Shown one piece after another: positions 6,891-64,000 of a stretch of 64,000 bases of DNA (the stretch's first letter is position 1; each line of letters begins with the position of its first letter). Below the pieces are notes generated by a model. It was not told the DNA's origin. It saw only the letters and a program-made list of their open reading frames with translations, and did no database searches. Source of the DNA: Malacoraja senta (taxonomy: Eukaryota); contig JAXLNO010005853.1 of assembly GCA_038087875.1 (NCBI GenBank), positions 124,001 to 188,000 on the forward strand, read 5' to 3'. A program made the translations under genes and the position numbers.

Positions 6891-7299
6891 CCTTCACCCC
6901 CTCACTCTGCTCCTTGCCATTCCCCTCCCCCCCATGCATTCAGTCCATCTCCTCTCAACCTGCCCCCCCATGCACTCTTAGTGGCTCTCCGTCAGCACAT
7001 CCGTTCCTGCCTATTAGGTTCCCATGGTGATGAAGAACACGTAGGCATGGCAAGTGGAAAAAGGATTTATCAAAGTTTAAAATGTGAATGACTCTTAAAA
7101 TATAACAACAATTTAAATGTTAAAGATGAGATTTATTAAGTTATTTCTTGTTGTATTCTGCTGCTCACTGCCTCTGGATTACTCTTTGCTGTTGATATAT
7201 ATATTTTTAAAGACAATTTTGATATAGTGAGATTGAGCGGTCAAATGTTAACAAAGAAAATCTGAGAATTTACCTCAAAAGTCATCATGCAGTGGAGGC

Positions 7300-17464: not shown

Positions 17465-20010
17465 CACGTCAAGTGAGTTTATTGTCATGTGTCCCTGATA
17501 GGACAATGAAATTCTTGCTTTGCTTCAGCACAACAGAACATAGTAGGCATTGACTACAAGGCATTCTGTAAATATATACACACATGAATTAATATACTGA
17601 TAAAGTGCAAATAACAGTTAATTGGCTAATAAAGTTCAGTGTTTTGTCCGAGCCAGGTTTAATAGCCTGATGGCTGTGGGGAAGTAGCTATTCCTGAACC
17701 TGGTCATTGCAGTCTTCAGGCTCCTGTACCTTCTACCTGAAGGTAGTAGGGAGATGAGTGTGTGGCCAGGATGGTGTGGGTCCTTGATGATACTGCCAGC
17801 CTTTTTGAGGCAGCGACTGTGATAGATCCCCTCGATGGAAGGGAGGTCAGAGCCGATGATGGACTGGGCAGTGTTTACTACTTTTTGTGATCTTTTCCTG
17901 TCCAGGGTGCTCAAGTTGCCGAACCAAGCCACGATGCAACCAGTCAGCATGCTCTCTACTGTGCACCTGTAGAAGTTAGCGAGAGTCCTCCTTGACAAAC
18001 CGACTCTCCGTAATCTTCTCAGGAAGTAGAGGCGCTGATATGCTTTCTTAATAATGGCATCAGTGTTCTCGGACCAGGAAAGATCTTCAGAGATGTGCAC
18101 GCCCAGTAATTTGAAGCTCTTGACCCTTTCAACCATCGACCGTTGATATAAATGGGACTGTGGGTTTTCATCCCACTCCTTCCAAAGTCCACAATCAGTT
18201 CCTTGGTTTTGCTGGTGTTGAGGGCCAGGTTATTGTGCTGGCACCATATGGACAGTTGCTCGATCTCTCTTCTATACTCTGACTCATCCCCATCAGCGAT
18301 ATGCCCCACAACAGTGGTGTCGTCAGCGAACTTGATGCTGGAGTTCGCACTATGTCCGGCTACACAGTCATGAGTATAGAGTGAGTACAGCAGGGGGCTG
18401 AGCACGCAGCCTTGAGGTGCTCCCGTGCTGATTGTTATCGAGTCTGACACATTTCCACCAATACGAACAGACTGTGGTCTGAGAGTGAGGAAGTCGAGGA
18501 TCCAATTGCAGAGGGATGAGCAGAGACCCAGTACTGCGAGTTTGGTAACCAGCTTGAAGGAGATGGTTGTATTAAATGCCGAGCTGTAATCGATGAATAA
18601 CAGCCTGACATATGAGTTTTTGTTGTCCAAGTGGTCCAGAGCGGAGTGGAGGGCCAGCGGGATCGCATCCACCGTTGATCTGTTGTGGCGGTAAGCGAAC
18701 TGCAGTGGGTCCAGGTTTTTATCGAGGTAGGAGTTGATCTGCGTCATGATCAACCTCTCAAAGCACATCATCACCACAGGCGTTAGTGCAACAGGTCGAT
18801 AGTCATTGAGGCACGTTACCTTACTCTTCTTGGGCACTGGTATAATTGAAGCCCTTTTGAAGCAGGAGGGAACCTCAGACCTCAGACGTGAGAGGTTGAA
18901 AATGTCTGTAAATACTCCAGCCAGTTGGTCTGCACAGGTTTTAGAACACGACCAGGTATACCATCAGGTCCAGGCGCTTTTCGAGGGTTCACCCCTCTGA
19001 AGGATTTCCTGATGTCGGCCTCTGTGACTGAGAGTGAAATACTATCACAGCGAATGGGGGCTCGGGAAGGCACATCGATGTTCTCCCTATCAAAGCGTGC
19101 GTAAAACGCATTGAGCTCATCAGGGAGTGATGTTTCGCCGACATTCGAGCTGCCTCCTGATTTCGACTTGTAAGAGGTGATTGCATTCAGGCCCTGCCAC
19201 AGCCGCCGAACATCTGTCTCTTCCTCCAGTTTGGAGCAGAAGTCCCTTTTGGCCTTTTTGATGGCCTTACCAAGGTCGTATCTGGACTACTTGTAGGCCA
19301 CTGTATCATCAGACATGAATGCCCAGTGTCTGGACTTCAGAAGAGTGCGGAACTCAAAGTTCATCCAAGGTTTCTGATTGGGAAATGCTCGGAAGGTTTT
19401 GGTGGGGATGCAGTACTCCACACACTTCTTAATGAAGTCTGTAACGACTGTGGTGTATTCGTTCAGGTCCGTTGCCGAGTCCTTGAACATTGCCCAGTCT
19501 ACAGACTCCAAACAGTCCTGGAGTTGTTCCTCTGCACCCCCCCCCCCCCTCCGACCAGCTCTGTACTGTCCTCACCTCTGAGGGTGCGCACTTTAATTGC
19601 TGCCTCTAGGCAGGAAGAAGCAGCACCGTGGTATGGTCGGATTTACCGAAGTGAGGGCGAGGGATAGAACGATAGGCATTCTTGAGTGGTCAAGGGTGTT
19701 TGGTCCTCTGGTGCAGCAGGAGACATGTTGGTGGAAGTTAGGGAGTGATTTCTTTAGGTTTGCCTTATTGAAGTCCCCGGCTATGGTGGTGAACGCCTCG
19801 GGGTAAGACGTCTGGTGTTTGTTGACCACGGCGTGCAGCTCCTCCAGTGCCAGACGGACGTCTGCCTGGGGTGGGATGTAGACCGCGGTCAGGATGATAG
19901 AGGTGAATTCCATTGGGAGGTAGAAGGGACGGCACTTCACCGCCAGATGTTCGAGGTGTGGAGAGCAGGAGTTGGACAGGACTGCCACGTCTGAGCACCA
20001 CACCATGCTG
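17465..20010 (-). mobile_element. Rex1/Babar LINE, right-arm copy, uninterrupted but frameshifted
   Basis: ORFs 19593..20096, 18019..18837 and 17636..18136; single empty site GACTTCATTAAGAAGTGTGTGG. Confidence 0.93.
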
Positions 20011-26246: not shown

Positions 26247-26886
26247 ATAGTAACATAGAAACATAGAAAATAGGTGCAGGAGTAGGCCATTCGGCCCTTC
26301 GAGCCTGCACCGCCATTCAATATGATCATGGCTGATCATCCAACTCAGTATCCTGTACCTGCCTTCTCTCCATACCCCCTGATCCCTTTAGCCACAAGGG
26401 CCACATCTAAATCCCTCTTAAATATAGCCAATGAACTGGCCTCAACTACCTTCTGTGGCAGAGAATTCTACAGATTCACCACTCTCTGTGTGAAAAATGA
26501 TTTTCTCATCTCGGTTCTAAAAGACTTCCCCCTTATCCTTAAACTGTGACCCCTTGTTCTGGACTTCCCCAACATCGGGAACAATCTTCCTGCATCTAGC
26601 CTGTCCAACCCCTTAAGAATTTTGTAAGTTTCTATAAGATCCCCCCTCAATCTTCTAAATTCTAGCGAGTACAAGCCGAGTCTATCCAGTCTATCTTCAT
26701 ATGAAAGTCCTGCCATCCCAGGAATCAGTCTGGTGAACCATCTCTGTACTCCCTCTGTGGCAAGAATGTCTTTCCTCAGATTTGGTGACCAAAACTGTAT
26801 GCAATACTCCAGGTGTGGCCTCACCAAGACCCCGTACAACTGCAGTAGAACCTCCCTGCTCTTATACTCAAATCCTTTTGCTATGA
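26247..26886 (-). mobile_element. CR1 3' fragment nested in L1 (right-arm copy)
   Basis: ORF 26468..26839; mirror of 2434-3073. Confidence 0.93.
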
Positions 26887-36344: not shown

Positions 36345-36800
36345 ATGATTTCAAGATGGGTAATTTCCACTCTAGGAAATCTGGGATGTCCTCCTTTTAG
36401 AGGAAACGCGGTTGCCCCCCAAACTCCACAACACCCTACAGTTGTGTATGATGCCCTCACCTGTGTCTCCTCCATTCGTACAGCTCCCCTCCCCCCCTCC
36501 CTTCCTCCAAGCAGAACAGGTTTAGAGTTCCCCTGGACCTTATCTTTTACCCCACCAGCCTCCACATCCACACGAATATTTTATGATATTTCCACTAACC
36601 ACAACGTGATGCCCACCCCAGGTCTTATCTTCACATCGCTTCCCATTTCTGCCTTGACAAGAGACCACTTTGCCCCTGCACCCAGGTGCACTTATCCCTC
36701 CACACTCACGTCTCCCTTGCCACTGCCACTTTCCCCTGTCACTGCAAAATGCACTGGATGCAAAGGCCTCACATTTCACATCTTCTGCAACATTTCCTGA
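36345..36800 (+). mobile_element. Decayed Penelope fragment
   Basis: Similar to 9980-10340 (AGAGTTCCCCTGG.CCT...CCCCACCAGCC...CCCACCC..C..ATCTTC.CATC). Confidence 0.65.
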
Positions 36801-36964
36801 AGGTTTGCAAGTGTTAAATGCAACAAATGGTGTTTGAGAGAAATAAACAAACTACACACCAGTTAGCCTCACACAATTAGCATTTATTTTGCTAGAATCT
36901 ATATGTGATAACTGCTCATTTTGAAAGTTTCAAGGGATTAGATAAAATCAATTTGCATTTTAAT

Positions 36965-38260
36965 GAACATAGGAACAGTACAGCACAGGAACAGGCCCTT
37001 CGGCCCAACATGTCCCTACCAAATTTGATGGCTGGTAAACTAACCTCTTCTGCCTACTTGTGATACACATTCCCCCCTTCCCTGTATATCCATGTGTCTA
37101 TCTAATTGCCTCTTCAATGCCCTATTGTATCTGATTCCACTAAACCTGGCAGGGCATTCCAGGCCCCATCACTCTATGTAGAACAAAACCTGCCCCTCAT
37201 ATTAAAACTATACCCTCTAGTCTTTGTCATTTCTACCTGGGGAAAAGGTTTTGACTGTCTACCTAATCTCTGCTTCTCATAGTTTTTTATACTTCTATCA
37301 GATTTTCCCTCAATATCCGACTCTCTAGAGAAAACAATCCAAGTATGTCCAACCTCTCCTCAGAGCTCATACTTTCTAATCCTGGTAAACCTTTTCTGCA
37401 CCCTCTCCAAAGAGCTTCCACATGCTTCCTGTACTGGGGCTATCAGAACTGCACACATTTTTATTTATTCAAGGTTTGACAAACCTGCTAGGAGTTTTTT
37501 TCCAAGTATGTAATTGGTAGAAAAATATGAGTGGGTGCAGTGTATTTGCATGTTCAGAAGATCTTTAATCAAATACCACATTGAGGTAGGTATGCGAAAT
37601 TCAAGCACTGATATTGGGGGAATGAAATCTAATAGGAACCAGTGGGCCGTAGAATGAGGGTGATGGTGTTAAGATATGTGGAAGACAGTTAGGAAAAGGT
37701 TTGCATTCACACACCAATCAAATAATAACTTGCCGTTTCATTTCCCCCTAAAATTGGGTACGTGTACATGAAACACAAGAGACTTGCGTGCAGGTATTGT
37801 AAGCAGTTGTAAAGACAAATGGAATGCTGGTTTTTATTGCACAAGATGAGTGTATGAAAGTAAGGATGTTTTAATGCAACATTACTGGGTACATTTCCCC
37901 CCATCATACTAATTCAGCTAATTTTTTCTCCACTCACTTAAACCGTCTATATGTCTGTGCCGGCCCATTGCGTCCTCATCACTTACTAACCCACCTGCCT
38001 TTGATTCGTCAGACAGCGTCTCTGCAGTATTTTTGGTGCTTTCATCCTTTGTTTGCTTTGGATACTCTGTTCCTTTTATATACTTGCAGAAGCTCCTTTT
38101 ATCCATTTTATATTTACCAATTTTTTCCATCAATCCTGTCCTCATAATTTTTTAAGATGTTTACTTCTGTCTTACAATCTCCCAATCCTCTTACAAATAA
38201 TCTTCACAACATTACTGTCGGCATTTTCTTTCATTTTGAAACTACTTTAGCCAACTGCTA
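36965..38260. mobile_element. Cluster of old CR1 fragments in both orientations
   Basis: CR1 tail (GGCCCTTCGGCCC, AGAAAACAATCC) and RT-derived remnants. Confidence 0.6.
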
Positions 38261-39113: not shown

Positions 39114-39644
39114 CTGAAAGTGTAGGCAGGTGGAAGATGTGTCTGTTGGTGGACCCGCACCGATGGTAACAGAAGCTATAAAGGTTGATCCACTGAATGC
39201 AGAGACTAGTGGGTGGGAAATGAGGATCAGGGAAAATCTATTCTTCCTCTGCCTTGGGGAGAGAATTAGCAAAGAAGTTCATGAAAAAGATTCAAAGCTG
39301 CCAAGGCCTCTGTCAGCTAATGTAGAGATTAAACCATGGGTTTAGGATGAAGGAAGACAGCTAAGAGGCATGTGAAACTTGAGTTCTATGTGGATGCAGG
39401 AAGCTGCAGCAATGCAGTTGCAAATGTATCAGATACACCACTGAGGGAGGGGCCGCTGAGTGGGACTGATGTGAGGACAGCTCCATGTACCCCACAGACA
39501 CACGGTCATAGCTGTGGGAATGTAGCATTGTTTCTCTCTGAAGTTACACTGCCTGATCCACATCAACAGAACCTGCCACTGTCACTGGAGATGCAGCATC
39601 CCTCCTGTTGACACCGGCAATGGAGCTGAGATGGTGACGTTCAC

Positions 39645-40009
39645 CTCTCTTCAACCAGCAGAAAGTGAAGCCAATTATAAGAAAATAGACCGCATAAATG
39701 GCAGCCCGAATGGCCAACACTCTTGGTCCATCCTCAAATAGGTGGATCTCACGCGTGTCTATCTGGTGTTCATTCACAGCCACACACGTGTATTTCCCTG
39801 GCAGCCTGGGGTGAAGCAGCTTTCCCACAGTCAGTAGTTTCTCTGGATCATGCGTGACTATCATCTCACTACTGTTCACGGGCAGTGCGCTGTTCCCTGG
39901 GCCGATCCACGTGATGTTTGCAGGGGGCTTCCTTCAGCCCTGCACACGAGGGTGTGTTCTCCAGTTACATTGTCGTTCACAACAGACAGCTCCAGGATGG
40001 TGGCTGGGA
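39645..40009 (-). pseudogene. Ig C2-type domain + transmembrane exon of an IgSF receptor, with a 1-bp frameshift at 39923-39927
   Basis: Acceptor CCTTCTCCAAG| and donor G|GTGAAC. Translation VPATILE...TLVCRAEGSP[fs]ANITWIG...GKYTCVAVNEH...RVLAIRAAIYAVYFLIIGFTFCWLKR. Confidence 0.85.
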
Positions 40010-40271
40010 CTTGGAGAAGGAAAAGATACAATTAAATTCATTGAATTAATCACTGTTGATGGTGTGTGCGGATAGAGACCATCTGAATGGGGATTGGAAG
40101 GACACACCTAGGAGACTGCAGTGAAATATTTGCAGATATGATAGTGTCTTTGAGAAGCACATGGATCTACATAGAAAATAAATAGATACATAGAAAATAG
40201 GTGCAGGAGTAGGCCATTCGGCCCTTCGAGCCTGCACCGCCATTCAATATGATCATGGCTGATCATCCAAC

Positions 40272-43100
40272 TCAGTATCCCGTACCTGCCTTCTCTCCAT
40301 ACCCCCTGATCCCTTTAGCCACAAGGGCCACATCTAACTCCCTCTTAAATATAGCCAATGAACTGGCCTCAACTACCCTCTGTGGCAGAGAGTTCCAGAG
40401 ATTCACCACTCTCTGTGTAAAAAAGATTTTCCTCATCTCGGTCTTAAATGATTTCCCCCTTATCCTTAAGCTGTGACCCCTTGTCCTGGAATTCCCCAAC
40501 ATCGGGAACAATCTTCCTGCATCTAGCCTGTCCAACCCCATAAGAATTTTGTACGTTTCTATAAGATCCCTCTCAATCTCCTAAATTCTAGCGAGTATAA
40601 GCCAAGTCTATCCAGTCTTTCTTCATATGAAAGTCCTGACATCCCAGGAATCAGTCTGGTGAACCTTCTCTGCACTCCCTCTATGGCTATAATGTCCTTC
40701 CTCAGATTTGGAGACCAAAACTGTACGCAATACTCCAGGTGTGGTCTCACCAAGACCCTGTACAATTGCAGTAGAACCTCCCTGCTCCTATACTCAAATC
40801 CTCTTGCTATGAAGGCCAACATACCATTCGCTTTCTTCACTGCCTGCTGCACCTGCATGCCTACTTTCAATGACTGGTGTACCATGACACCCAGGTCTCG
40901 CTGCACCTCCCCATTTCCTAATCGGCCACCATTTAGATAATAGTCTGCCTTCCCGTTTTTGCCACCAAAGTGGATAACCTCACATTTATCCACATTATAC
41001 TGCATCTGCCAAACATTTGTCCACTCACCCAGCCTATCCAAGTCACCTTGCAGTCTCCTAGCATCCTCCTCACAGCTAACGCTGCCCCCCAGCTTAGTGT
41101 CATCCGCAAACTTGGAGATGTTGCTTTCACTTCCCTCGTCCAGATCATTAATATAAATTGTAAATAGCTGGGGTCCCAGCACTGAGCCTTGCGGTACCCC
41201 ACTAGTCACTGCCTGCCATTGTGAAAAGGACCCGTTTACTCCTACTCTTTGCTTCCTGTTTGCCAGCCAGTTCTCTATCCACATCAATACTGAACCCCCA
41301 ATACCGTGTGATTTAAGTTTGTATCCTAATCTCTTATGTGGTACCTTGTCGAAAGCCTTCTGAAAGTCCAGATACAACACATCCACTGGTTCTCCCCTAT
41401 CCACTCTACTAGTTACATCCTCGAAAAATTCTATAAGATTCGTCAGACACGATTTACCTTTCGTAAATCCATGCTGACTTTGTCCAATGATTTCACCACT
41501 TTCCAAATGTGCTGCTATCCCATCTTTAATAACTGACTCTAGCAGTTTCCCCACTACCGATGTTAGACTAACTGGTCTGTAATTCCCCGTTTTCTCTCTC
41601 CCTCCCTTCTTAAAAAGTGGGGTTACGTTTGCTACCCTCCAATCCTCAGGAACTACTCCAGAATCTAAAGAATTTTGAAAAATTATCACTAATGCATCCA
41701 CTATTTCTGGGGCTACTTCCTTAAGTACTCTGGGATGCAGCCTATCTGGCCCTGGTGATTTATCGGCCTTTAATCCATTCAATTTACCCAACACCACTTC
41801 CCGACTAACCTGGATTTCACTCAGTTCCTCCATCTCCTTTGACCCGCGGCCCCCTGCTATTTCCGGCAGATTATTTATGTCTTCCTTAGTGAAGACGGAA
41901 CCAAAGTAGTTATTCAATTGGTCCGCCATATCCTTGTTCCCCATGATCAATTCACCTGTTTCTGACTGCAAGGGACCTACATTTGTTTTAACTAATCTCT
42001 TTCTCTTCACATATCTATAAAAACTTTTGCAGTCAGTTTTTATGTTCCCTGCCAGTTTCCTTTCATAATCTATTTTCCCTTTCCTAATTAAGCCCTTTGT
42101 CCTCCTCTGCTGGTCTCTGAATTTCTCCCAGTCCTCTGGTATGCTGCTTTTTCTGGCTAATTTGTACGCAACATCTTTTGCTTTGATACTATCCCCTGAT
42201 TTCCCTTGTTATCCACGGATGCACTACCTTCCCTGATTTATTCTTTTGCCAAACTGGGATGAACATTTTTTGTAGTTCATCCATGCAGTCTTTAAATGCC
42301 TTCCATTGCATATCCACCGTCAACCGTTTTAGAACTAATTGCCAGTCAATCTTGGCCAATTCACGTCTCATACCCTCAAAGTTACCTTTTTTTAAGTTCA
42401 GAACCGTTGTTTCTGAATTAACAATGTCACTCTCCATCCTAATGAAGAACTCAACCATATTATGGTCACTCTTGCCCAAGGGGGCACGCACAACAAGTCT
42501 GCTAACTAACCCTTCCTCATTACTCAATACCCAGTCTAGAATAGCCTGCTCTCTCGTTGGTTCCTCTACATGTTGGTTTAGATAACTATCCCTCATACAT
42601 TCCAAGAAATCCTCTTCCTCAGCACCCCTGCCAATTTGATTCACCCAATCTATATGTAGATTGAAGTCACCCATTATAACTGTTTTGCCTTTGTTGCACG
42701 CATTTCTAATTTCCTGTTTGATGCCATCCCCAACTTCACTACTACTGCTAGGTGGCCTGTACACAACACCCACCAGCGTTTTCTGCCCCTTAGTGTTTCG
42801 TAGCTCTACCCATACTGATTCCACATCCTCCAAGCTAATGTCCTTCCTTTCCACTGCGTTAATCTCCTCTCTAACCAGCAACGCTACCCCACCTCCTTTT
42901 CCTTTCTCTCTATCCCTCCTGAATATTGAATATCCCTGGATGTTCAGCTCCCAGCCTTGGTCACCCTGGAGCCATGTCTCCGTGATCCCAACTATATCAT
43001 AATCATTAATTGCTATCTGCACGTTCAACTCATCGACCTTATTACGAATGCTCCTTGCATTGAGACACAAAGCCTTCAGGCTTGTTTTTACAACGCTCTT
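40272..43100 (-). pseudogene. CR1 ORF2 (APE endonuclease + RT), two frameshifts (~42200 and ~40565)
   Basis: LNARS, ITETW, GGGVAL, MGDFN, SDH; [14 protein letters not shown]; split across ORFs 42189..43382, 40559..42010 and 40272..40541. Confidence 0.9.
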
Positions 43101-43387
43101 ACCCCTTATACAATTATGTTGGAAAGTGGCTCTTTTTGATTTTTGCCCTGGATTTGTCTGCCTGCCACTTTTACTTTTCACCTTGCTACCTATTGCTTCC
43201 GCCCGCATTTTGCACCCCTCTGTTTCTCTGCTCACCCATTTAAGAACCCCACCACCTCTTATTCTCTGTTTATTATTGTTTTCTTCTTTCCCCCCTACAT
43301 GTTGGGTCTGAGTGCTTTCCTTCTCTGCCTCCTGCCTCACACACTGTCTAATAGCATTCTCTATTTGAGTCCCTCCCCCCAATCATT

Positions 43388-44344
43388 CTAGTTTAAAGTC
43401 TCCCCAGTAGCCTTTGCAGATCTCCCCGCCAGGATATCGGTCCCCCTCAGGTTCAAGTGCAACCCATCCTTTTTGTACAGGTCGAACCTTCCACAAAAGA
43501 GGTCCCAATGATCCAGAAATTTGAATCCCTGCCTTCTGCACCAGTCCTTCAGCCACGCATTTATCCTCCACCTCGCTCCATTCCTACTCTCACTGTCGCG
43601 TGGCACAGGCAGTAATCCCGAGATTGTTACCTTCGCTGTCCTTCTCTTTAACTCCCCTCCTAACTCCCTAAATTCTCCTTTCAGGACCTCTTCTCTTTTT
43701 TTACCTATGTCATTGGTACTTATATGTATCACGACTTCGGGCTCGTCTCCCTGCCCTTTCAGGATGTCTTGGACACGTTGAGACACATCACAGACCCTGG
43801 CACCAGGGAGGCAAACTACCATCCGGGTCTCCCGACTGCGTCCACAGAATCGCCTGTCTGACCCCCTAACTATAGAGTCCCCTATTAATATTGCCCTCCT
43901 CTTCTTACCCTTCTGAGCAACAGGACCGGTCTCTATACCGGAGGCCCGGCCGCTGTCGCTACCCCCAGGTAGGCTGTCCACCCCAACAGTGCTCAAACAG
44001 GAGTACTTATTGTCAAGGTGTACAGCCACCGGGGTACTCTCTAGTCCCTGCCTGTGCCCCTTGCCTCTCCCAACCGTGATCCACTTGCCTGCCTCCTGTG
44101 GTGTTGGAGTGACCACATCCCTGTAACTCCTCTCGATGACTTCCTCGCTCTCCCTGACCAGACGGAGGTCATCGAGCTGCTGCTCCAGGTTCCTAATACG
44201 GTCCATTAGGAGCCCCATCTCGATACACCTGACGCAGATGTGGACGTCTGGAGGGCTATCAGACTCCATGACTTCCCACATCTGACATCCAGAACAGTAA
44301 ACTGCCCTGGCCCTCATACTCCCCTTACACTGGATAGAATACAA
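43388..44344 (-). CDS. CR1 ORF1 (Cys-rich N-terminus, coiled coil, SGNH esterase)
   Basis: CSGC...CVRC; LEQQLDDLRL; IGDSIVRG; DGLHLN. Confidence 0.88.
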   Translation of the reverse strand: MYSIQCKGSMRARAVYCSGCQMWEVMESDSPPDVHICVRCIEMGLLMDRIRNLEQQLDDLRLVRESEEVIERSYRDVVTPTPQEAGKWITVGRGKGHRQGLESTPVAVHLDNKYSCLSTVGVDSLPGGSDSGRASGIETGPVAQKGKKRRAILIGDSIVRGSDRRFCGRSRETRMVVCLPGARVCDVSQRVQDILKGQGDEPEVVIHISTNDIGKKREEVLKGEFRELGGELKRRTAKVTISGLLPVPRDSESRNGARWRINAWLKDWCRRQGFKFLDHWDLFCGRFDLYKKDGLHLNLRGTDILAGRSAKATGETLN

Positions 44345-44929
44345 AACAAACTGCTACAATACAAAACAAACTGCTACAATACAGTACAATCAGCAGGGAT
44401 CTGACTCTCAATCAGCTGCTCCCTCTTGTCTGCGTCCACCAATCAGCGGCTTCCTCAAACCCACTTGTTTTTGAAGTGGAACTTGGAACGTTACAGATTT
44501 GGGTTCCTCTTTAACTCCTACCGCTCGTGTGTAGCTCCTCCCTCTGCGATATCTCCAACGGCTCTTGGGCCTCTGTTGACTCTCTGATCTACAGGGAATG
44601 GAGGGATATGGATCATGTGTCGGCAGATGATATTAGTTTAACTTACCGTACCATTATGTTCTGCACAGATATTGCGGGCCAAAGGGCCTGTTCCTGTGCT
44701 GTACTGTTCTATGTAATATTCAGTGAGAGAACATACAGGTTCCCGGAGTCGATGTGAATGGAAAGAGACGGATGTAAATACCCCAGGGCAGTCTGTGGAT
44801 CTTTGCAACACAGACCATGTCATAGACACAGGGACTGGAGGTTCAGCAGGTGAATGTGGTTCTGAATGTCTGCACCATAAGCTCATCTGCGGGAGACGCG
44901 GTTCATAGGATTATACGTGATAATAGTAG

Positions 44930-45610
44930 AATGAGAACATTCGGCCCATTAAGTCTACTCCATCATTCAACCGTGGCTGATCTATCTCTCCTAACTCAAT
45001 TCTCCTTCCTTCTCATAACCTCTGACACCCGCACTAATCAGGAATCGATTTATCTCTGGACCCTCTCCAGAGCCAGCACATCCTTCCTCAGATATGGTGC
45101 CTAAAATTGCTCACAATTTTCCAAATGTGGCCTGACCAGCGCCTGAAAGAGTCTCAGCATTACATCCCTACTTTAGTATATAAGCCCTCTTGAAATAAAT
45201 GCTAGCATTGCGTTTGCTTTCTTTACAACTGATTCGACTTGCAGATTAACTTTTGGGAATCCTGCACCAGCATTCCCAAGTCGCCTTGCACCTCCGATTT
45301 CCGGATTCTCTGTCCAATTAGAAAATAATCAACGCCTTTAATCCTACCACCAAAATACATGACTCTACACTTTTTCACACTTTTCTATCTGCCACTTCTC
45401 TGCCCACTCTCCTAACCTATCCAAGTTCTTCTGCAGAGTCCCTGCTTTCTCTGCACTACCTGCCCCTTCACCTATTTTCGTATCATCCGCAAACTTGGCC
45501 ACAAAGCCTTCAATCCCCTCATCCAAATCAATAATATACAGCGTGAAGAGCAGCGGCCCCAGCACCGAGCCCTGCGGAACTCTGCTAGTAACTGGCAGCC
45601 AACCAGAAAA
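44930..45610 (-). mobile_element. Old CR1 RT/3' fragments
   Basis: ORF 45365..45697 [15 protein letters not shown]...FADDTK. Confidence 0.85.
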
Positions 45611-46079
45611 GGCCTGGTTAACCGAATTAGGAGGGGTGGGGATTTTTAACTTCCGCGCCCTAATCTCATCTGCGGGAGGAACCCCCCCACCGCACACCTC
45701 CCCTGGGGAAGAAGGGCTGAAGAGGGCTGTGCAAGGTGAGGGTCAACATTCCAGGACAACTGGAATGGAGGCGGCGGCTGCAATGGGCCTCTGTGGCCAC
45801 TGCATCGAGGACTGTAAAATGGTGCAAAATGGCAACTGTTGCCCAGACTCAGTGGGTTCTTCTGTACATTATGTACTAACCGGGGGGATTGTGCTTATTG
45901 ATGTAAGGTGATATTCTTACTGATCTATATGCAAAAATGTATTTCACTGTAATTGGTACATGTGATAATAAAGAAACCATTGAACCGAAAATAGACACAA
46001 AATGCTGGAGTAATTCAGCGGGCAGGCAGCATCTCTGGATAGAATGAATGGGTGACGTTTCGGGCCGTGACTCTTCTTC

Positions 46080-46288
46080 AGGAGAACTGAGTCAGTATCA
46101 CAGATGCTGTAGAACTCGCCAGTTCTGATAGAAACAGCGGGCAAGTCACCTGAAATTGTTCTATTCAAGGTTGACCCATTGAACCATTGAGTCAACATTG
46201 AATACAACAATTTCTGGTAACTTTCTCGCTGTTTGTATCAGATGTTCTACAGCAGGTTATCCATCTGTGATACTGACTCAGTTCTCCT
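46080..46288. repeat. ~210-bp fold-back (hairpin) element
   Basis: Perfect 27-bp outer inverted repeat (46080-46106 / 46262-46288), imperfect inner stem, 15-nt loop at 46176-46190. Confidence 0.9.
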
Positions 46289-46980
46289 CTCTCCACTGAC
46301 ACTGCCTGATCTGCTGGGTGTTTCTTGCAGCTCTGACGTGCATTTTGCAGCTCTGGTTTATATCTTTGTTTGTGTTCTCTGTCTCCAGTTTCCTTCCTTA
46401 ATTTATCAACCAGATAATTTCATCAACAGCAAACCTAGACTCACCCTTTCAGAGATATTTCCTATTACCAATCCACCCCTCTATACAACCTCTGCAACTT
46501 CAGCTAATTTATTTTGTTGGATTAATCGTTGAGAGAATAACTGATTAATATTCCATTTTGCTTATCTTCAGTAGAACTGGTTAGTTTTGATAAAAGAGAG
46601 AAAATGTATCATCCAAAATTCTTGAATTCAATGGAGTCTGCAATGATGCAGTGAGCCCTGTTCTTCAAATTGCATTTGACTGGTTATAAGGAAGTCACAA
46701 AAAATAGAGAGGAGGGAATTGCATGGATGATTAAAATTACAAGCAACAGAAAGCTCAGGATTAACCATGTAGAATGAATAAAAGGTTTTCCCTCATTCCC
46801 CTGCCCATCAACTGCATTTATTCCTTGGGAAAGCAGCCAACATAATCAAGGACCACTCACACCCGAGTTACTCTCTTCTCCCCTCCCCCATTACCAGAAC
46901 CACAGGCTGAAAACAATGTCACTGGAGGTCCCATGATTCTCCCATGAACACAAGCAATGGAGATTAGACATGATGTTCAC

Positions 46981-47128
46981 CCATGTTGAACCACTAGAAA
47001 GTGAAGCCAATCACAAGAAAGTAGACCCAATAAACGGCAGCTGAAATGATCAACCTGTCCATTCCCTCCCGCACACACAGGTATCTCCAGATACATTATC
47101 ACCATCGCTCCAAGATGGTGGCTGAAGC
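46981..47128 (-). pseudogene. Internally deleted, stop-containing paralog of the C2+TM exon
   Basis: CAGCCACCATC(C/T)TGGAGC start and AAVYWVYFLVIGFTF*WFNM end are homologous to 39645-40009; splice sites are retained and the flanking introns are also similar. Confidence 0.85.
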
Positions 47129-47328
47129 CTAGAGAGGGATAAAAGTCAATTACCTTCACTGTTATTCATTGGTGCAGGGGGAGAACCAGGAAGGGGTGAA
47201 GATTTGAAAGAGACCCAGCAGGAGAATGGAGTGCAATATTCAGAGAGGAAACAGAACAAAGCTCATTCTTCTTACCGTTGTTTAATGTGATTTTATCATT
47301 TACTCCTCAACACTGAATGTTTCCTTAC

Positions 47329-47691
47329 CCAAAACCTGTAGTCCCATCTCATCCTGAGTCACCTGAATATTCTGAGGGAATTTCCAGATCCAAACATGAC
47401 AGAAATAGTTGTTGGTGTCATTCAACGTGAGTCCCCTCACTCTGATGGAGGCGTCTCCCTTGTCTAGGTTTCCCACCAGCTCATATCGACCTCCTCTATT
47501 TACATTGTCAGTGCCGTGACCGCTTGTGGGGTCGGAGCGGGTATGATTAAAGACAACGGACTCTTCCCATGGAGTCCCCTTCATCCAGAGGATAGTGATC
47601 ACCCTGCTCTTTGTGCTCGAGGGGCTGAAGGTGCATCTCAGTGTGGCACCACCTCCTCTCTTCCCGATCACCATGGATGCGCTGACATCAC
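47329..47691 (-). CDS. Ig V-set domain exon of an IgSF receptor (Siglec/CD33-like or NKp30-like fold)
   Basis: Open phase-1/phase-1 exon: TLRCTF, ILWMK, GRYELVGNLDKGDASIRV, DTNNYFCHV; donor G|GTAAGG. The acceptor TACGAG is weak. Confidence 0.88.
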
Positions 47692-48789: not shown

Positions 48790-49016
48790 TGACAGAAACA
48801 TAGAAACATAGAAACATAGAAAATAGGTGCAGGAGTAGGCCATTCGTCCCTTCGAGCCTGCACCTCCATTCAATATGATCATGGCTGATCATCCAACTCA
48901 GTATCCTGTACCTGCTTTCTCTCCATACCCCCTGATCCCTTTAGCCACATGGGCCAAATCTAACTCCCTCTTAAATATACCCAATGAACTGGCCTCAACT
49001 ACCTTCTGTGGCAGAG
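48790..49016 (-). mobile_element. CR1 3' end
   Basis: (ACATAGAA)n tail and GGCCATTCG.CCCTTCGAGCCTGCAC. Confidence 0.88.
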
Positions 49017-51458: not shown

Positions 51459-52460
51459 TTGGTGCTCTATAATGAGCTTAATACCACTTCATGCAATGGA
51501 TGCAGTGGGAAGGTGTGGAGCGGAGGAAGATCAGCTGGAAAGAACTATGGGAAATGGAAGCAAGCAAGATCAGCTTCATCATCAGAGCGACATATGACGT
51601 GCTTCCATCACCAAAGAACCTCCATCAGTGGTACGGCGAGGATCCAACCTGTGCCATCTGCCCAACTCCAGCGACCCTCAAAAACATCATGGTAGGCTGC
51701 AAGACCAGCTTCACACGTGGCGGCATAATCAGGTACTAAAAAGCCTGGCATCAGCCCTTGAGAACAGGCGGTGTGCGACCAACTCCTTGCCTCCAAGAGC
51801 AAGCAACCCCCCCCCCAAGGGTAACAACCTTTGTCCGAGAAGGACAGAAAACATCTAAATTTCCTTCCACCAGATCAGAAGAAGGAAACCTATGCAGGGC
51901 CCGTGACTGGAGGATGTTGGCGGACATCGGCCGACAACTAATTTTTCCACCTGAAATTGCTTCCACCAACCTCAGGCCAGACTTGGTGTTCTGGTCCCCT
52001 TCACAGAAGACTGCTTACATCATAGAGCTCACAGTTCCATGCGAGAACTCTGTTGAGGAGGCCTATGAGCGTAAGAAGCTGCGCTACGCAGAGCTTGCAG
52101 CAGAGGCAACGCAGCGTGGCTGGAACACCAAAATCTATCCAGTTGAAGTGGGATGCAGAGGATTTGTTGCATCATCTACCATCAGACTGCTGAAGGAGCT
52201 TGGAATCCACGGTCAGGCTCTGCGGAAGACCATAAGATCACTCTCAGAGGCGGCTGAAAGAAGCAGCCGGTGGATTTGGCTCAAGCGGAAAGACCCATGC
52301 TGGGCCCCAAGTATGTTGGGGTGAATCTTTGGGACGGTTTGACACGGGACACGCGCTGAGGGTTGATCATCCTGCAGCGGGCTGCGTTTGTGGTGGGTGT
52401 ATAGTGTTAAAAGGCCGAAACACCCAGTGATGCAAGGGTACACTACTGATGATGTGTCCT
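51459..52460 (+). mobile_element. HERO/NeSL-like non-LTR retrotransposon 3' part (CCHC + restriction-like endonuclease)
   Basis: RATYDVLPSP, CAIC...GC, WRHNQVL, LRPDLVFWS, IELTVP, YERKKLRY, PVEVGCRG; one frameshift. Confidence 0.85.
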
Positions 52461-53700: not shown

Positions 53701-54328
53701 ATTTATAATTTTATAAACTACTATCAGGACTCCCCTCGACCTCCAACACTCCAGAGAAAACAATTGAAGTTGGTCCAACCTTCACCTAATAGCTAATATC
53801 CAATACAGCTACCATTCTGGAAAAGCTCTTCTGCAACCTCAGCAAAGTCACATCAAAGATGCACAGAGTCTCTTGCCCAGAGTAGGGGAATCAAGGACCG
53901 GAGGACGTAGATTCAAGGTGAAGGGGGAAAGATTTAATAGGAATCTGAGGGGTAACCTTTTCACACAAAGGGTGGTGGGTGTTTGGAACAAGCTACCAGA
54001 GGAGGTAGTTGAGGAAGAAACAGTTAGACAGGTACATGGATAGGACAAGTTTGGAGGGATATGGACCAAGCGCAGGCAGGTGGGACTAGTGTAGCTGGGA
54101 CATGTTGGCCAAGTGTGGGCAAGTTGGGCCGAAGGGCCTGTTTCCACACTGTATCACTCTATAACTCTCCACATCTTTCCTGGAATGGGTCATGCAAATG
54201 CAGCTGAACCAAAGTTCTATAAAGTTGATGACTACAGAGAGACTGGAGCCTAGCAGTGTGTGTATTCAGCACTCCAATGGGTTAATCCGAGCAGATATCT
54301 GATAAAAGAAAGCCACTTCCCTCATCAA

Positions 54329-56890
54329 ACAGGAAATTAGAAATGCGTGCAACAAAGGCAAAACAGTTATAATGGGTGACTTCAATCTACATATAGATTG
54401 GGTGAATCAAATTGGCAGGGGTGCTGAGGAAGAGGATTTCTTGGAATGTATGCGGGATAGTTATCTAAACCAACATGTAGAGGAACCAACGAGAGAGCAG
54501 GCTATTCTAGACTGGGTATTGAGTAATGAGGAAGGGTTAGTTAGCAGTCTTGTTGTGCATGCCCCCTTGGGCAAGAGTGACCATAATATGGTTGCGTTCT
54601 TCATTAGGATGGAGAGTGACATTGTTAATTCAGAAACAACGGTTCTGAACTTAAAGAAAGGTAACTTTGAGGGTATGAGACGTGAATTGGCCAAGATTGA
54701 CTGGCAATTAGTTCTAAAAGGGTTGACGGTGGATATGCAATGGAAGGCATTTAAAGACTGCATGGATGAACTACAAAAATTGTTCATCCCAGTTTGGCAA
54801 AAGAAGAAATCAGGGAAGGTAGTGCATCCGTGGATAACAAGGGAAATCAGGGATAGTATCAAAGCAAAAGATGATGCGTACAAATTAGCCAGAAAAAGCA
54901 GCATACCAGAGGACTGGGAGAAATTCAGAGACCAGCAGAGGAGGACAAAGGGCTTAATTAGGAAAGGGAAAATAGATTATGAAAGGAAACTGGCAGGGAA
55001 CATAAAAACTGACTGCAAAAGTTTTTATAGATATGTGAAGAGAAAGAGATTAGTTAAAACAAATGTAGGTCCCTTGCAGTCAGAAACAGGTGAATTGATC
55101 ATGGGGAACAAGGATATGGCGGACCAATTGAATAACTACTTTGGTTCTGTCTTCACTAAGGAAGACATAAATAATCTGCCGGAAATAGCAGGGGGCCGCG
55201 ACAAGGTACCACATAAGAGATTAGTATAGAAGGAGATGGAGGAACTGAGTGAAATCCAGGTTAGTCGGGAAGTGGTGTTGGGTAAATTGAATGGATTAAA
55301 GGCCGATAAATCACCAGGGCCAGATAGGCTGCATCCCAGAATACTTAAGGAAGTAGCTCCAGAAATAGTGGATGCATTTGATAATTTTTCAAAACTCTTT
55401 AGATTCTGGAGTAGTTCCTGAGGATTGGAGGGTAGCAAACGTAACCCCACTTTTTAAGAAGGGAGGGAGAGAGAAAACGGGGAATTACAGACCAGTTAGT
55501 CTAACATCGGTAGTGGGGAAACTGCTAGAGTCACTTATTAAAGATGGGATAGCAGCACATTTGGAAAGTGGTGAAATCATTGGACAAAGTCAGCATGGAT
55601 TTACGAAAGGTAAATCATGTCTGACGAATCTTATATAATTTTTCGAGGATGTAACTAGTAGAGTGGATATGGGAGAACCAGTGGATGTGTTGTATCTGGA
55701 CTTTCAGAAGGCTTTCGACAAGGTACCACATAAGAGATTAGTATACAAACTTAAAGCACATGGTATTGGGGGTTCAGTATTGATGTGGATAGAGAACTGG
55801 CTGGCAAACAGGAAGCAAAGAGTAGGAGTAAACGGGTCCTTTTCACAATGGCAGGCAGTGACTAGTGGGGTACCGCAAGGCTCAGTGCTGGGACCCCAGC
55901 TATTTACAATTTATATTAATGAACTGGATGAGGGAATTGAAGGCAACATCTCCAAGTTTGCGGATGACACTAAGCTGGGGGGCAGTGTTAGCTGTGAGGA
56001 GGATGCTAGGAGACTGCAAGGTGACTTGGATAGGCTGGGTGAGTGGGCAAATGTTTGGCAGATGCAGTATAATGTGGATAAATGTGAGGTTATCCACTTT
56101 GGTGGCAAAAACAGGAAAGCAGACTATTATCTAAATGGTGGCCGATTAGGAAATGGGGAGATGCAGCGAGACCTGGGTGTCATGGTACACCAGTCATTGA
56201 AAGTAGGCATGCAGGTGCAGCAGGCAGTGAAGAAAGCGAATGGTATGTTAGCTTTCATAGCAAAAGGATTTGAGTATAGGAGCAGGGAGGTTCTACTGCA
56301 GTTGTACAGGGTCTTGGTGAGACCACACCTGGAGTATTGCGTACAGTTTTGGTCTCCAAATCTGAGGAAGGACATTATAGCCATAGAGGGAGTGCAGAGA
56401 AGGTTCACCAGACTGATTCCTGGGATGTCAGGACTTTCATATGAAGAAAGACTGGATAGACTTGGCTTATACTCGCGAGAATTTAGGAGATTGAGAGGGG
56501 ATCTTATAGAAACGTACAACATTTTTATGGGGTTGGACAGGCTAGATGCAGGAAGATTGTTCCCGATGTTGGGGAAGTCCAGGACAAGGGGTCACAGTTT
56601 AAGGATAAGGGGGAAATCCTTTAAGACTGAGATGAGGAAAAACTTTTTCACACAGAGAGTGGTGAATCTCTGGAACTCTCTGCCACAGAGGGTAGTTGAT
56701 GCCAGTTCATTGGCTATATTTAAGAGGGAGTTAGATGTGGCCCTTGTGGCTAAGGGGATCAGGGGGTATGGAGAGAAGGCAGGTACGGGATACTGAGTTG
56801 GATGATCAGCCATGATCATATTGAATGGCGGTGCAGGCTCGAAGGGCCGAATGGCCTACTCCTGCACCTATTTTCTATGTATCTATGTAT
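54329..56890 (+). mobile_element. 5'-truncated CR1 LINE of the same subfamily as 40172-44585, several frameshifts/stops
   Basis: ORFs 54372..55229, 55372..55638 and 55663..56796; (TCTATGTA)n tail. Confidence 0.95.
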
Positions 56891-57904
56891 CTATCTACTT
56901 ATCGCTGGGTCACAGCTGTTGCCTCAAGTTTTAAAATCCTTTCCTGTAACCGAGGGAGGAACTTCTCGACAAGGGGAAGATGTGTCTGAGTCATTGGGGG
57001 GAGGGGGTGGGGGGGGGGAGGGGGCATTGATCAGCTAAGTATGGGCACTTGATGGAATGGGTAAACATAAATCCTTGTCCCATTTCTGGGTGGCCCGTTG
57101 CCCTCCAAACCCTTCCTATTCATATATGTTCAAATTTATTTTAGTAAATGTAATTTAGTAAATGTCTTAAATGTAATTGAGTCTGCTTCCATAGCTTCCT
57201 CTGGCAGCTTGATCCAGATATAGACTACCCTCTGAGTGAAAGAAGGGTCCCTCTTAATCTCTCCCCTCTCAACTTAAGCCTATGCCCTCTGGTTTTAAAA
57301 TCATCAACCCTGGGGAAAAAGACTGAGCATTCACTTTATCTATGCTTTGCATTATCTTTTATCCCCCTACATCCTTCTGCACTCCAAAAAAACCCATCCC
57401 AGCCTATCCAACCTCTCCCCATAACTCAAGCCGTAAGCCCAGCTAGCATCCTGGTGAATCTCTTCTGCACCCTTTCCAACTTAATGCCATCCTTCCTGCA
57501 GTTGGGCCACCAGCACTGCACATAGTACACACCAATGATGTGTACGGCTACTTCATGATGTCCCAACTTCTGTGTTCAGTTCCATGCCCAGTGAAAGTAA
57601 GCATGCAAAAGCCTAGGGATCTGCATGTTGTAGCCATGAGCATTGCAGTTGAGTGCCATACTATTGGCATTTGTCCAGACGATAAAAAACATGGAATTAC
57701 ACAGGCACTGACTAAACCATTTGAGGGGAAATAAAGGTTAAAAAGGCAACTTGAGCAGATGTCCCATTTCCTTTGTTGCAATAATGATTAAACTTGGAAA
57801 CCACTTACCCTGGGCTGTGTTTCATCGAGACTTGACTCATCCATTTATACCAACATGGTTTAATTGGGCCAGACATCACGTTTCTGCACTGTAAGTTCTA
57901 TGTT

Positions 57905-58885: not shown

Positions 58886-60510
58886 CTCATCCATACCGAT
58901 CAACATGCCAATGCCATCTACACTAGTCCCATTTGCCTGCATTTGACCTACATCTCGCTAAACCTTTCCTATCCATGCACCTGCCCATATGTCTTTCAAC
59001 TGTTGTTCTTGTACCCACCTCAACTCCTTTCTCTCGAAGCTTGTTCCAGATACATATCAACCTCTGTGTAAAAACATTGCTCCTCAGGTTCCTGTTAAAT
59101 GTTTCCCCTCTCAGCTTGTGGTTAGCTCTTGGAACTGCACCATAAGCATTCCAGTCTGTGTAGGTAGGAATGGGAAATAAGGGCTGGCTGTGACTGTGAA
59201 GCCCACAGAGCCAGACACAGGCACCTCTCTGGATGTAGAGAAAAAAATGGGTTGGGTGAGACTCTGAATAGGCAACTGTTTTGTTCACCCCCGACGGGTT
59301 GAAGGGGGAGAAAGGGAGAGCAAGGGGTGGTGTGGAAAGAGTGGATTGGGTGGGGAATGGGGGAGAGAAGCCAGCGAGGGGATGGGAGAGAATTCAATAA
59401 GGTGGGAGTGAAGAAAGAGAAACACAGGCAGCACTGTGGCACAGCGATAGAACTGTTGCCTGATAGCGCCAGAGATCTGGGTTCGATACTGACTATGGAT
59501 GCTGTCCGTTCAAAATTTGTACGTTCTCCCTGTGACCACGTGGGTTTCCTCCCGGTGCTCCAGTTTCCTCCTACACTCCAAAGGCACACAGGTTTGTAGG
59601 TTAATTGACTTTGTTAAAATTGTTCCGAGTGTGTAGTGTGTCCCTAGTTTGGACTAAAAGTGCTAGTGTACGGGGTGATCGCTGGAAGGGACACAGATTC
59701 AGTGGGCCAAAGGGCCTGTTTCCACTCTATATTTCTAAAGGCCAAACTCAACACATTAACATTAATGTGTAGACAGTGGTTGCCCTGACACTGGTGTGAT
59801 AACATTCTGCAAACTGGAGTATTTTTGGAAGGGTGGTGTGATTCAGATTAACTTCCCTCAGAGTTTCGTACAGCAAAGCATGAAACGAGATGTGGTGCAA
59901 TCATCGATTCTCAGGAACTGCTGTTGGGAGAAGGCCAAATGACTGTACCCATTCTGATAGATATGTCATCTCACAGACACAAGGAATGGACAATAAATAT
60001 TGGATCAACCAGCAACAACTGCATCTCCTGAACATGTCAGTCTGAAAAATTAATGCCAATGATTGCAATGATTTTACAGAAGAGCTGACAAATTTACGTG
60101 CCATTCCTGTGTTGTAACAATTAAACTACAAAACCATTCTACACAATGTGTTGAGGGAGAAGGGGATAGTCATGTAGTATAGAAAAAGGCCCTTTGAAAA
60201 AGGCCAACTCATCCCTGCTGACCAAGGTCACCCATCTAAGCCAGTCCCATTTGCCCACATTAGCTCCATATCCTCTCAATCTTTCCCCATTCCCAGCTGA
60301 ACCTTAACCTGGATTGCATTTCACTCTCCTTAATGTCAATGTGCCCAGAAGTGAGTACTCTGTACTCTTTTGTTTATTGCCCCTCCTCTTCTCAAAGGTA
60401 GCTTCTCAAAGAATTTTATTGTCAAGCAGCAATGACTTGAACAAATTCTTGCTAAGTGAAGGTTTGTACTGCATCTGAGTGAATTATTACAATTTTTTAT
60501 AATCATTCTA
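58886..60510 (+). repeat. Direct segmental duplication, copy 1
   Basis: Matches 62493-64000 (initial offset 3607 bp). Confidence 0.93.
59427..59736 (+). mobile_element. V-SINE (in duplicated block; copy at 63036-63343)
   Basis: GGCAGCACTGTGGCACAGCG...GGTTCGAT...GTTCTCCCTGTGACCACGTGGGTTTCCTCC. Confidence 0.9.
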
Positions 60511-62492: not shown

Positions 62493-64000
62493 CTCATCCA
62501 TACCGATGAACATGCCCATACCATCTACACTAGTCCCATTTGCCTGCATTTGACCTACATCTCATTAAACCTTCCTATCCATGTACCTGCCCATGTGTCT
62601 TTCAACTGTTGTTCTTGTACCCGCCTCAACTCCTTCCTCTGGAAGCTTGTTCCAGATGCATATCAACCTCTGTGTAAAAACATTGCTCCTCAGGTTCCTG
62701 TTAAATGTTTCCCCTCTCAGCTTGTGGTTAGCTCTTAAAACTGCACTATAAGCATTCCAGTCTGTGTAGGTAGGAATGGGAAATAAGGGCTGGCTGTGCC
62801 TGTGAAGCCCACAGAGCCAGCCACAGGCACCTCCCTGGATGCAGAGAAAAAAATGGGTTGGGTGAGACTCTGAATAGGCAATCGTTTTGTTCACCCCCGA
62901 CAGGTTGAAGGGTGAGAAAGGGAGAGCAAGGGGTGGTGTGAGAGGAGTGGAGTGGGTGGGGAATGGGGGAGAGAAGCCAGCGAGGGGATGGGAGAGAATT
63001 CAATAAGAGGGTGGGAGTGAAGAAAGAGAAACAGAGGCAGCACTGTGGCACAGCGATAGAACTGTTGCCTGATGGCACCAGAGACCTGGGTTCGATACTG
63101 ACTATGGATGCTGTCCGATCAAAGTTTGTACGTTCTCCCTGTGACCACGTGGGTTTCCTCCCAGTGCTCCAGTTTCCTCCTACACTCCAAAGACACACAG
63201 GTTTGTAGGTTAATTGACTTTGTTAAAATTGTTCCGAGTGTGTAGTGTGTCCCTAGTTTGGACTAAAAGTGCTAGTGTACGGGGTGATCGCTGGTAGGGA
63301 CACAGACTCAGTGGGCCAAAGGGCCTGTTTCCACTCTATATCTCTAAAGGCCAAACTCAACACATTAACATTAATGTGTAGACAGTGGTTGCCCTGTCAC
63401 TGGTGTGATAACATTCTGCAAACCACAGTATTTTTGGAAGAGTGGTGTGATTCAGATTAACTTCCCTCACAAGGAATGGACAATAAAAATTGGATCAACC
63501 AGCAACAACCGCATCTCCTGAACATGTCAGTCTGAAAAATTAATGCCAATGATCGCAATGATTTTACAGAAGTGCTGACAAATTTATGTGCCATTCCTGT
63601 GTTGCAACAATTAAACTACAAAACCATTCTACACAATGTGTTGAGGGAGAAGGAGATAGTCATGTAGTATAGAAAAAGGCCCTTTGAAAAAGGCCAACTC
63701 ATCCCTGTTGACCAATGTCACCCATCAAAGCCAGTCCCATTTGCCCACATTTGCTCCATATCATCTCAATCTTTCCCCATTCCCAGCTGAACCTTAACCT
63801 GGATTGCATTTCACTCTCCTTAACGTCAATGTGCCCAGAAGTGAGTACTCTGTACTCTTTTGTTTATTGCCCCTCCTCTTCTCAAAGGTAGCTTCTCAAA
63901 GAATTTTATTGTCAAGCAGCAATGACTTGAACAAATTCTTGCTAAGTGAAGGTTTGTACTGCATCTGAGTGAATTATTACAATTTTTTATAATCATTCTA
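62493..64000 (+). repeat. Direct segmental duplication, copy 2 (runs off the window; internal deletion relative to copy 1)
   Basis: CTCATCCATACCGAT start; lacks ~59860-59980 of copy 1. Confidence 0.93.

Follow-up and report, generated by a model that had tools for sequence, protein, structure and literature searches.

A putatively decaying member of a Siglec-15-like receptor family in the skate Malacoraja senta

A stretch of 64,000 nucleotides from the skate Malacoraja senta (NCBI GenBank assembly GCA_038087875.1, contig JAXLNO010005853.1, positions 124,001 to 188,000; hereafter, the window) contains, on its reverse strand, a V-set exon and a second exon that encodes a C2-type immunoglobulin (Ig) domain together with a transmembrane (TM) segment. 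We find that this locus is, as judged by homology, a member of a lineage-expanded chondrichthyan family of Siglec-15-like genes that forms a multi-copy tandem cluster, and that the copy in the window is probably reduced, decaying or polymorphically null, rather than a working receptor devoid of lectin function. This reading rests on a 1-bp frameshift in the C2 exon, a long interspersed nuclear element (LINE) next to the acceptor of that exon, a V1 and leader that are missing from the window, and a deletion of the V3-V4 region.

In the model that we propose, the locus would belong to a skate cluster of tandem Siglec-15-like receptor genes, and its intact relatives would encode a leader, a V1 of the Siglec-15 lectin type with its F-strand Arg, a V2 with His, a C2 domain and a TM segment; in skates, V2 would be followed by V3 and V4, both derived from V2. 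The C2-TM exon of the window would represent a batoid subclass in which an Arg lies about five residues inside the outer end of the helix and the tail is short and tyrosine-free, an anchor that would signal through an acidic adaptor, presumably one with an ITAM (immunoreceptor tyrosine-based activation motif). This copy would have been reduced by the deletion of V3 and V4 and the insertion of a LINE just upstream of the C2 exon, and on the reference haplotype by the 1-bp frameshift, while the His would be a family-wide trait of the membrane-proximal domain and no evidence of a new ligand. The features are collected in Table 1.

Table 1. Features of the Siglec-15-like locus, in window coordinates
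Feature	Positions	Strand	Description
V-set exon, V2 type, of a Siglec-15-like gene (assigned by homology)	47329..47691	-	Pfam V-set 6.6e-16, tree, structure model
C2, TM and cytoplasmic-tail exon	39544..40010	-	acceptor AG 40012-40011, stop 39546-39544
Frameshift site	39931..39932	-	one base missing relative to Amblyraja and other contigs
ITIM-like VGYMEL (ITIM, immunoreceptor tyrosine-based inhibitory motif)	39478..39495	-	in the tail frame, past the stop codon
Relic of a second C2-TM exon	46979..47150	-	homologous start SATILE, stops in the homologous frame
LINE	40172..44585	-	ORF1 (ORF, open reading frame) with GDSL-esterase-like domain, endonuclease, reverse transcriptase
Junction where a segment is missing	44868..44872	-	L001 22666/29201, L003 16980/30035 and L004 8726/10562 flank the same point

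The V exon and its family

The V exon lies between an acceptor AG at 47693-47692 and a donor GT at 47328-47327, is in phase 1 at both ends, and comprises 120 full codons (47689-47330) with a canonical B-F cysteine pair, two N-X-S/T sites and the motifs RYELVGNLDKGDASIRV and YFCHV; an initial annotation of the window had picked out a V-set exon by these two motifs, and the Pfam match, the splice sites and the phases bear it out. Word-indexed protein searches with single exons gave few matches owing to a length window (two for V and one for C2-TM), and an exhaustive profile search with a threshold of E <= 0.001 was used instead. With the V exon as query, 200 proteins pass this threshold, and the best matches are skate, ray, shark and chimaera proteins (Amblyraja radiata, Rhinoraja longicauda, Mobula, Heptranchias, Callorhinchus, Scyliorhinus and Rhincodon), mostly named "sialic acid-binding Ig-like lectin 15" or "uncharacterized" by NCBI. 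The full-length members P0009, P0011 and P0008 encode leader, V1, V2, C2 and TM, the Amblyraja model P0003 reads V1-V2-V3-V4-C2, and the number of V domains per relative ranges from two to four. The lineage-expanded chondrichthyan family anticipated by the initial annotation is thereby recovered.

We placed the window V in a maximum-likelihood tree of 27 V domains, in which it clusters with two Amblyraja V2 exons with support of 100/99; the V1 domains form a separate clade (100/100), and skate V2, V3 and V4 all fall inside the V2 clade. The window V and the V2 of the four-V model from Amblyraja share 84% identity, and from these comparisons the exon is assigned to the second V domain of the family, the V2 type. 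Its His codon, CAT at 47398-47396 (His98), occupies the site of the essential Arg of Siglec-15, and we mapped the residue aligned to this His in every V domain of the relatives. V1 domains carry Arg (CRVEL or CRVDF), V2-type domains of nearly all chondrichthyan members carry His, as do the V4-type exons of Rhinoraja, and the exceptions are a Tyr in Amblyraja V4, a Cys in one Mobula protein and an Arg in a whale shark protein. This conservation and the positions of the domains suggest that V1 is the lectin-type domain and that V2 is a duplicated, membrane-proximal V that would have lost its Arg early in cartilaginous fishes.

The substitution of His for the Siglec Arg, which the initial annotation had noted, is confirmed by an alignment to human Siglec-15 (7zoz) in which His98 stands opposite the Arg of YFCRV. 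The non-sialic ligand that had been read from it does not follow, because His is the norm across chondrichthyan V2 domains and is uninformative in this respect; the locus shows clear homology to a named family in which His is usual at this site. Nor does the description as an uncharacterized, stand-alone V-C2-TM receptor hold, as the V exon is the V2 of the family in the tree and an Arg-bearing V1 precedes it in intact relatives.

Siglec-15 is the closest known protein when the ranking of folds and the full-length model P0009 are considered, while the sequence of the V domain alone ties with TIM-3. An AlphaFold model of the V exon (predicted local distance difference test score, pLDDT, 86.6) finds its best match among solved structures in the 7zoz Siglec-15 V domain, with a TM-score of 0.81 and a root-mean-square deviation of 2.5 A, in agreement with the Siglec-like scaffold first proposed for the exon. 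Full-length Heptranchias P0009 matches human Siglec-15 at 2.6e-24, collinear over V2-C2-TM, and its next match stands at 6e-16. The window V matches human Siglec-15 at 3.2e-7 (33.6 bits) and TIM-3 at 2.1e-7, level with Siglec-15; V1 alone matches Siglec-15 at 4e-16 (62.4 bits), with CD33 next, and by 62.4 versus 33.6 bits the lectin domain of Siglec-15 is more closely related to V1 than to the window V. The TIM-3 (HAVCR2) V shares with the window V a score equal to that of Siglec-15 and a good fold match, but TIM V domains have extra cysteines and are followed by a mucin stalk, not a C2 domain, and the full-length relatives match Siglec-15 far better than they match TIM proteins.

The window exons share with human Siglec-15 the framework GR(F/Y)xLxGN...D(A/L)S(I/L)RV...YFCxV and the order V, C2 and TM with a basic TM residue. 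The sole V of human Siglec-15, however, carries the essential Arg where the window V has His; the F-strand Arg that characterizes the ligand-binding V of Siglecs sits in V1 of the relatives. In Siglecs the V is N-terminal and precedes one or more C2 domains; a C2 exon follows the window V, but a V of this type is second in intact relatives, and the N-terminus of this copy was not found in the window. Siglec-15 has a mid-membrane Lys that pairs with DAP12. Its layout of one V, one C2 and this Lys differs from that of the chondrichthyan genes, which have two to four V domains, and from the window exon, in which an Arg lies near the outer end of the TM segment. Homology in V2 and in the C2-TM exon joins the window to chondrichthyan models from Amblyraja (XP_032874704.1), Rhinoraja (XP_078286866.1), Pristis (P0162), Heptranchias (XP_067838218.1) and Callorhinchus (LOC103174418), and so the V2-type domain and the homologous C2-TM exon of this multi-V family are both present; a leader and an Arg-bearing V1 upstream of them are not found within the window. 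The Rhinoraja and Pristis models have the TM Arg in common with the window, Pristis also the same stop position, and Amblyraja and Rhinoraja a relic exon. Unlike these models, the window copy lacks V1 and leader (in the window) and V3-V4, carries a LINE and has a frameshift in the assembly; L003, the four-V paralog of Amblyraja, further differs in its neutral TM, which is not of the Arg type. Searches of the literature on Siglecs or Siglec-15 of sharks and cartilaginous fishes and on DAP12 of the elephant shark yielded no description of the family. It is already predicted by automatic annotation, to which this locus adds one more, damaged member.

The membrane anchor and the reading frame of the C2 exon

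The C2-type Ig domain is fused directly to the TM stretch RVLAIRAAIYAVYFLIIGFTFCWL within the exon that starts at 40010. The hydrophobic stretch VLAIRAAIYAVYFLIIGFTFCWL spans 39720-39652; its core, VLAIRAAIY..., includes the Arg codon CGG (39708-39706), and a tail of 34 residues with zero tyrosine follows. Because the GT at 39642-39641 is passed over both in related gene models and in a contig from a related organism, the exon ends with the stop codon and not at 39645. The initial annotation, which had placed C2 and TM in a single exon, was therefore right about the direct junction of the two, but its exon end has to be moved to 39544 and its reading frame is broken by a 1-bp shift. As a whole the exon matches Rhinoraja P0010 at 1e-66; its first 29 codons are 72-79% identical to Rhinoraja models, and its second part has a protein identity of 84-89% to Rhinoraja P0010/P0012 and of 66% to Pristis P0162.

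The TM Arg is common to Rhinoraja P0010 and P0152 and to the sawfish model Pristis P0162, all of which read LAIRAAIY, and one Rhinoraja paralog has Trp at this position; the stop of the window aligns with the C-terminus of P0162 and is also shared with P0010. Other family members have Lys-type anchors, with a mid-membrane Lys and a very short tail (P0008, P0011 and P0018), or a neutral TM and, behind it, several tyrosine motifs (P0009 and P0005). Since the Arg-type exon can be aligned to the neutral-TM type (IGFT.W.LK(R/K)G), it is probably derived from the latter. The combination of a tyrosine-free tail and an Arg close to the outer end of the TM segment is the layout of the ITAM-adaptor receptors NKp46, GPVI, Fc alpha RI and LILRA, in which the TM Arg mediates pairing with FcR gamma. 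With these the window exon shares a basic TM residue, an Arg about five residues into the segment, and a short tail without signaling tyrosine motifs; in both cases, inhibitory relatives with tyrosine-motif tails occur in the same family. No homology to these receptors extends past the Ig superfamily. An activating-type class is thus plausible by analogy for the Arg-TM exons, with a presumed adaptor, and the activating-type Arg put forward by the initial annotation was a fair inference, given that Arg is conserved in Rhinoraja and Pristis. Versions with a Lys TM, an Arg TM and a tyrosine-bearing tail occur side by side in the family, the hallmark of receptors that form activating and inhibitory pairs. 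The stretch homologous to VGYMEL is coding in the Rhinoraja model P0152 and is preceded by a stop at the P0010 locus; we draw no conclusion from it, since the DNA identity within it is no higher than in its flanks.

The frameshift is a 1-bp deletion that becomes apparent when the window sequence, GAAGGAAG, is compared to that of Amblyraja, GAAGCGAAG, and of other contigs, GAAGGGAAG; at the site itself the window has GG, as against GGG or GCG in relatives. Two frames share the C2 domain, with the first 28 codons (VPATILEL...CRAEGS) in one and the remainder (PPANITW... onward) in the other, and the first frame ends at a stop 15 codons past the shift. Logan contigs were aligned onto 39300-40300, a view that covers the C2-TM exon region, and in these contigs an extra base behind 39930 restores AEGKPPANITW. 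The extra base accounts for 100% of the depth of X1, X25 and X23 and for about half of the depth of X2, where X1 and X2 are from the same species as the window and X25 and X23 from other organisms; X1, in which both exons are best represented, is otherwise near-identical to the window, intron included. As about half of the X2 depth lacks the extra base, the frameshifted form occurs in reads too and is not confined to the assembly. The intact-frame form is either an allele or a very recent paralog, which contigs cannot tell apart, and contigs can drop variants.

Losses, relics and the state of this copy

The V-to-C2 intron is 7.3 kb long and contains the 4.4-kb LINE, which is inserted in the orientation of the gene. 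The element ends 154 bp before the C2 exon begins, has an 8-bp target-site duplication on either side (TGTAGATC, at 44593-44586 and 40171-40164) and is absent from the Amblyraja loci. A second copy of this young LINE lies at 54323-56896 on the forward strand; the ORFs of the element are an esterase-type ORF1 of 318 aa (amino acids), an endonuclease of 397 aa and a reverse transcriptase of 483 aa, and Amblyraja holds fragments of it that are <=96% identical.

Upstream of the LINE, two points that stand 6.5 kb apart in Amblyraja L001, 13 kb apart in Amblyraja L003 and 1.8 kb apart in Rhinoraja L004 adjoin each other in the window, at about 44870. The missing segment corresponds to V3, a second TM relic and V4 in Amblyraja and to a V4-type exon in Rhinoraja, and end points that are shared among three related loci argue for a deletion in the lineage of the window. 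Situated about 180 bp downstream from the V exon, the relic at 47150-46979 retains an acceptor and its initial residues (SATILE); most of its C2 is gone, and a Ser occupies the position of the TM Arg of the live exon. In Amblyraja, L001 (20144-20245) and L003 (15071-15121) carry this relic after V2 as well, and Rhinoraja L004 has it at 7122-7278, in a locus for which no V2 exon was found; both Amblyraja loci contain a further relic, placed between V3 and V4 (L001 25994-26122 and L003 28358-28489). Together with the V-domain tree, these shared relics indicate that the four-V genes of skates may have arisen when a V2-C2-TM block was duplicated repeatedly within the gene and the inner C2-TM exons then decayed; the window copy would later have lost V3 and V4 again.

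Searches with tblastn, for which ten relatives served as queries, and with a V1 profile in six frames found neither V1 nor leader in the window, including the 16 kb upstream of the V exon, which upholds the missing leader exon reported initially; tblastn with ten family proteins also found no further tail or tyrosine-tail exon in the window. Across the whole window, these searches recovered only the two known exons and the relic. A weak tblastn extension at 47782-47690, considered as a V1 remnant, contains a stop and was assigned to the intron, as the same non-coding sequence lies directly upstream of Amblyraja V2. Collinear stretches of the two Amblyraja loci are 91-96% identical to the window, about 93%, and because L001 and L003 are about equally similar (92-95%), one-to-one orthology is not assignable. 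Synteny with Amblyraja ends at 48795, a transposable-element boundary. Amblyraja has V1 at a distance of 9 kb upstream of its V2; nothing corresponds to this V1 in the 15 kb of the window that remain, which are rich in transposable elements.

Several observations weigh against decay. All V exons are in phase 1-1, so that V2 would still splice in frame to C2 after the loss of V3-V4; the V exon is open in both species, the window and Amblyraja; and an intact-frame version with a near-identical flanking intron exists in the species, so that the gene may be functional on other haplotypes. V1 and leader could also lie beyond the end of the window at position 64000, given the abundance of transposable elements in the upstream 16 kb. 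Finally, the V exon is 91.1% identical to that of L001 (47330-47689 versus 19527-19892), with flanking non-coding DNA at 94.0-94.5%, and differs from Amblyraja by 26 non-synonymous and 6 synonymous changes, that is, by 0.10 non-synonymous (dN) and 0.077 synonymous (dS) differences per site. The replacements concentrate in the predicted BC, C'C'' and FG loops and leave the framework unchanged, a pattern that looks, from the comparison of two sequences, like selection and not like free decay, and that would suit a recently functional, diversifying immune receptor.

These points, together with good splice sites, would support a working V-C2-TM(Arg) activating receptor on the intact allele, in which a V2-type domain is the only or outermost V and the leader lies beyond the window; such a receptor would be a derivative of Siglec-15 without the lectin Arg, signaling through an ITAM adaptor. 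An Arg TM with a short tail is common to the sawfish gene model, and NCBI Rhinoraja models (P0010, 266 aa) have a single V followed by a C2 and an Arg-bearing TM, but these single-V models start without a signal peptide and so look partial. Contigs of a related organism stop exactly at the exon border 40010 with zero intron depth, as spliced RNA would; in the region 39729-40010, contigs of X25 and X23 end at or within 3 bases of this border, X25 with zero intron depth, consistent with spliced transcripts of homologues in related species. No run recorded as RNA contained either exon. The frameshift on the reference haplotype, the lack of a leader or V1 within 16 kb upstream, the LINE in sense orientation just before the acceptor and the V1 that stands upstream of V2 in the collinear, ~93% identical L001 all speak against it, and we consider a working receptor of this kind rather unlikely, though the most serious competitor to a decaying or null copy. 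Its boldest form, which we regard as doubtful, is that on an intact allele the V3-V4 deletion created a minimal V2-C2-TM(Arg) receptor, with or without V1 and with diversifying loops, a Siglec-15 descendant turned protein-recognizing activating receptor and paired with an inhibitory multi-V neighbor; if so, the two relic C2-TM exons would record the assembly of multi-V genes by repeated internal duplication of V-C2-TM.

Were the frameshift an assembly error only, the locus would be an ordinary intact member of the family, and X1 does show only the version with the extra base. Yet about half of the X2 depth lacks this base, as in the window, the stretch in question, GG versus GGG, is very short for an error of the homopolymer kind, and the other structural losses would stand regardless, all of which makes an error improbable. 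Compatible exon phases and the existence of paired activating and inhibitory forms in the family would also allow both exons to serve as alternative downstream exons of a multi-V inhibitory gene beyond the end of the window, giving rise to an activating isoform. This would require splicing over >32 kb of mostly transposable-element DNA, the layout is absent from the gene models of relatives, and the collinear Amblyraja V2 has its own V1 9 kb upstream; we give such an arrangement next to no credence. A reduced, decaying or polymorphically null copy therefore is the reading that we retain as probable.

As a single locus, this one matters little, being one reduced copy in a family predicted across skates, rays, sharks and chimaeras, although it shows that domain number is still changing by deletion. 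The family, with its Siglec-15-type lectin domain plus extra V domains, is of moderate interest. The main practical value is one of caution, in that a His in place of the Siglec Arg reflects the position of the domain and is not a clue to the ligand.

Related loci and surrounding DNA

In Amblyraja L001, the V3 exon (26439-26787) is split over two frames, and the NCBI model at this locus (P0002, 185 aa) consists of V1 and part of V2; to judge from its exons, this copy may be damaged too. Downstream of the gene, window positions 36705-37723 match L001 116-1143 at 91%, which in Amblyraja lies 9 kb upstream of V1 and in the opposite relative orientation; this match suggests an inverted neighboring copy or a rearrangement. 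Beside it, at 36557-36685, lies a pseudo-exon with a stop, the counterpart of which is used as the C-terminus of Rhinoraja P0012.

The upstream stretch rich in transposable elements contains an ORF of 188 aa at 51758-52324 on the forward strand, without a Pfam match. Further upstream, on the reverse strand, are two near-identical ORFs of about 150 aa, at 59122-59589 and 62746-63198, which lie 3.6 kb apart and are probably parts of a repeated element.

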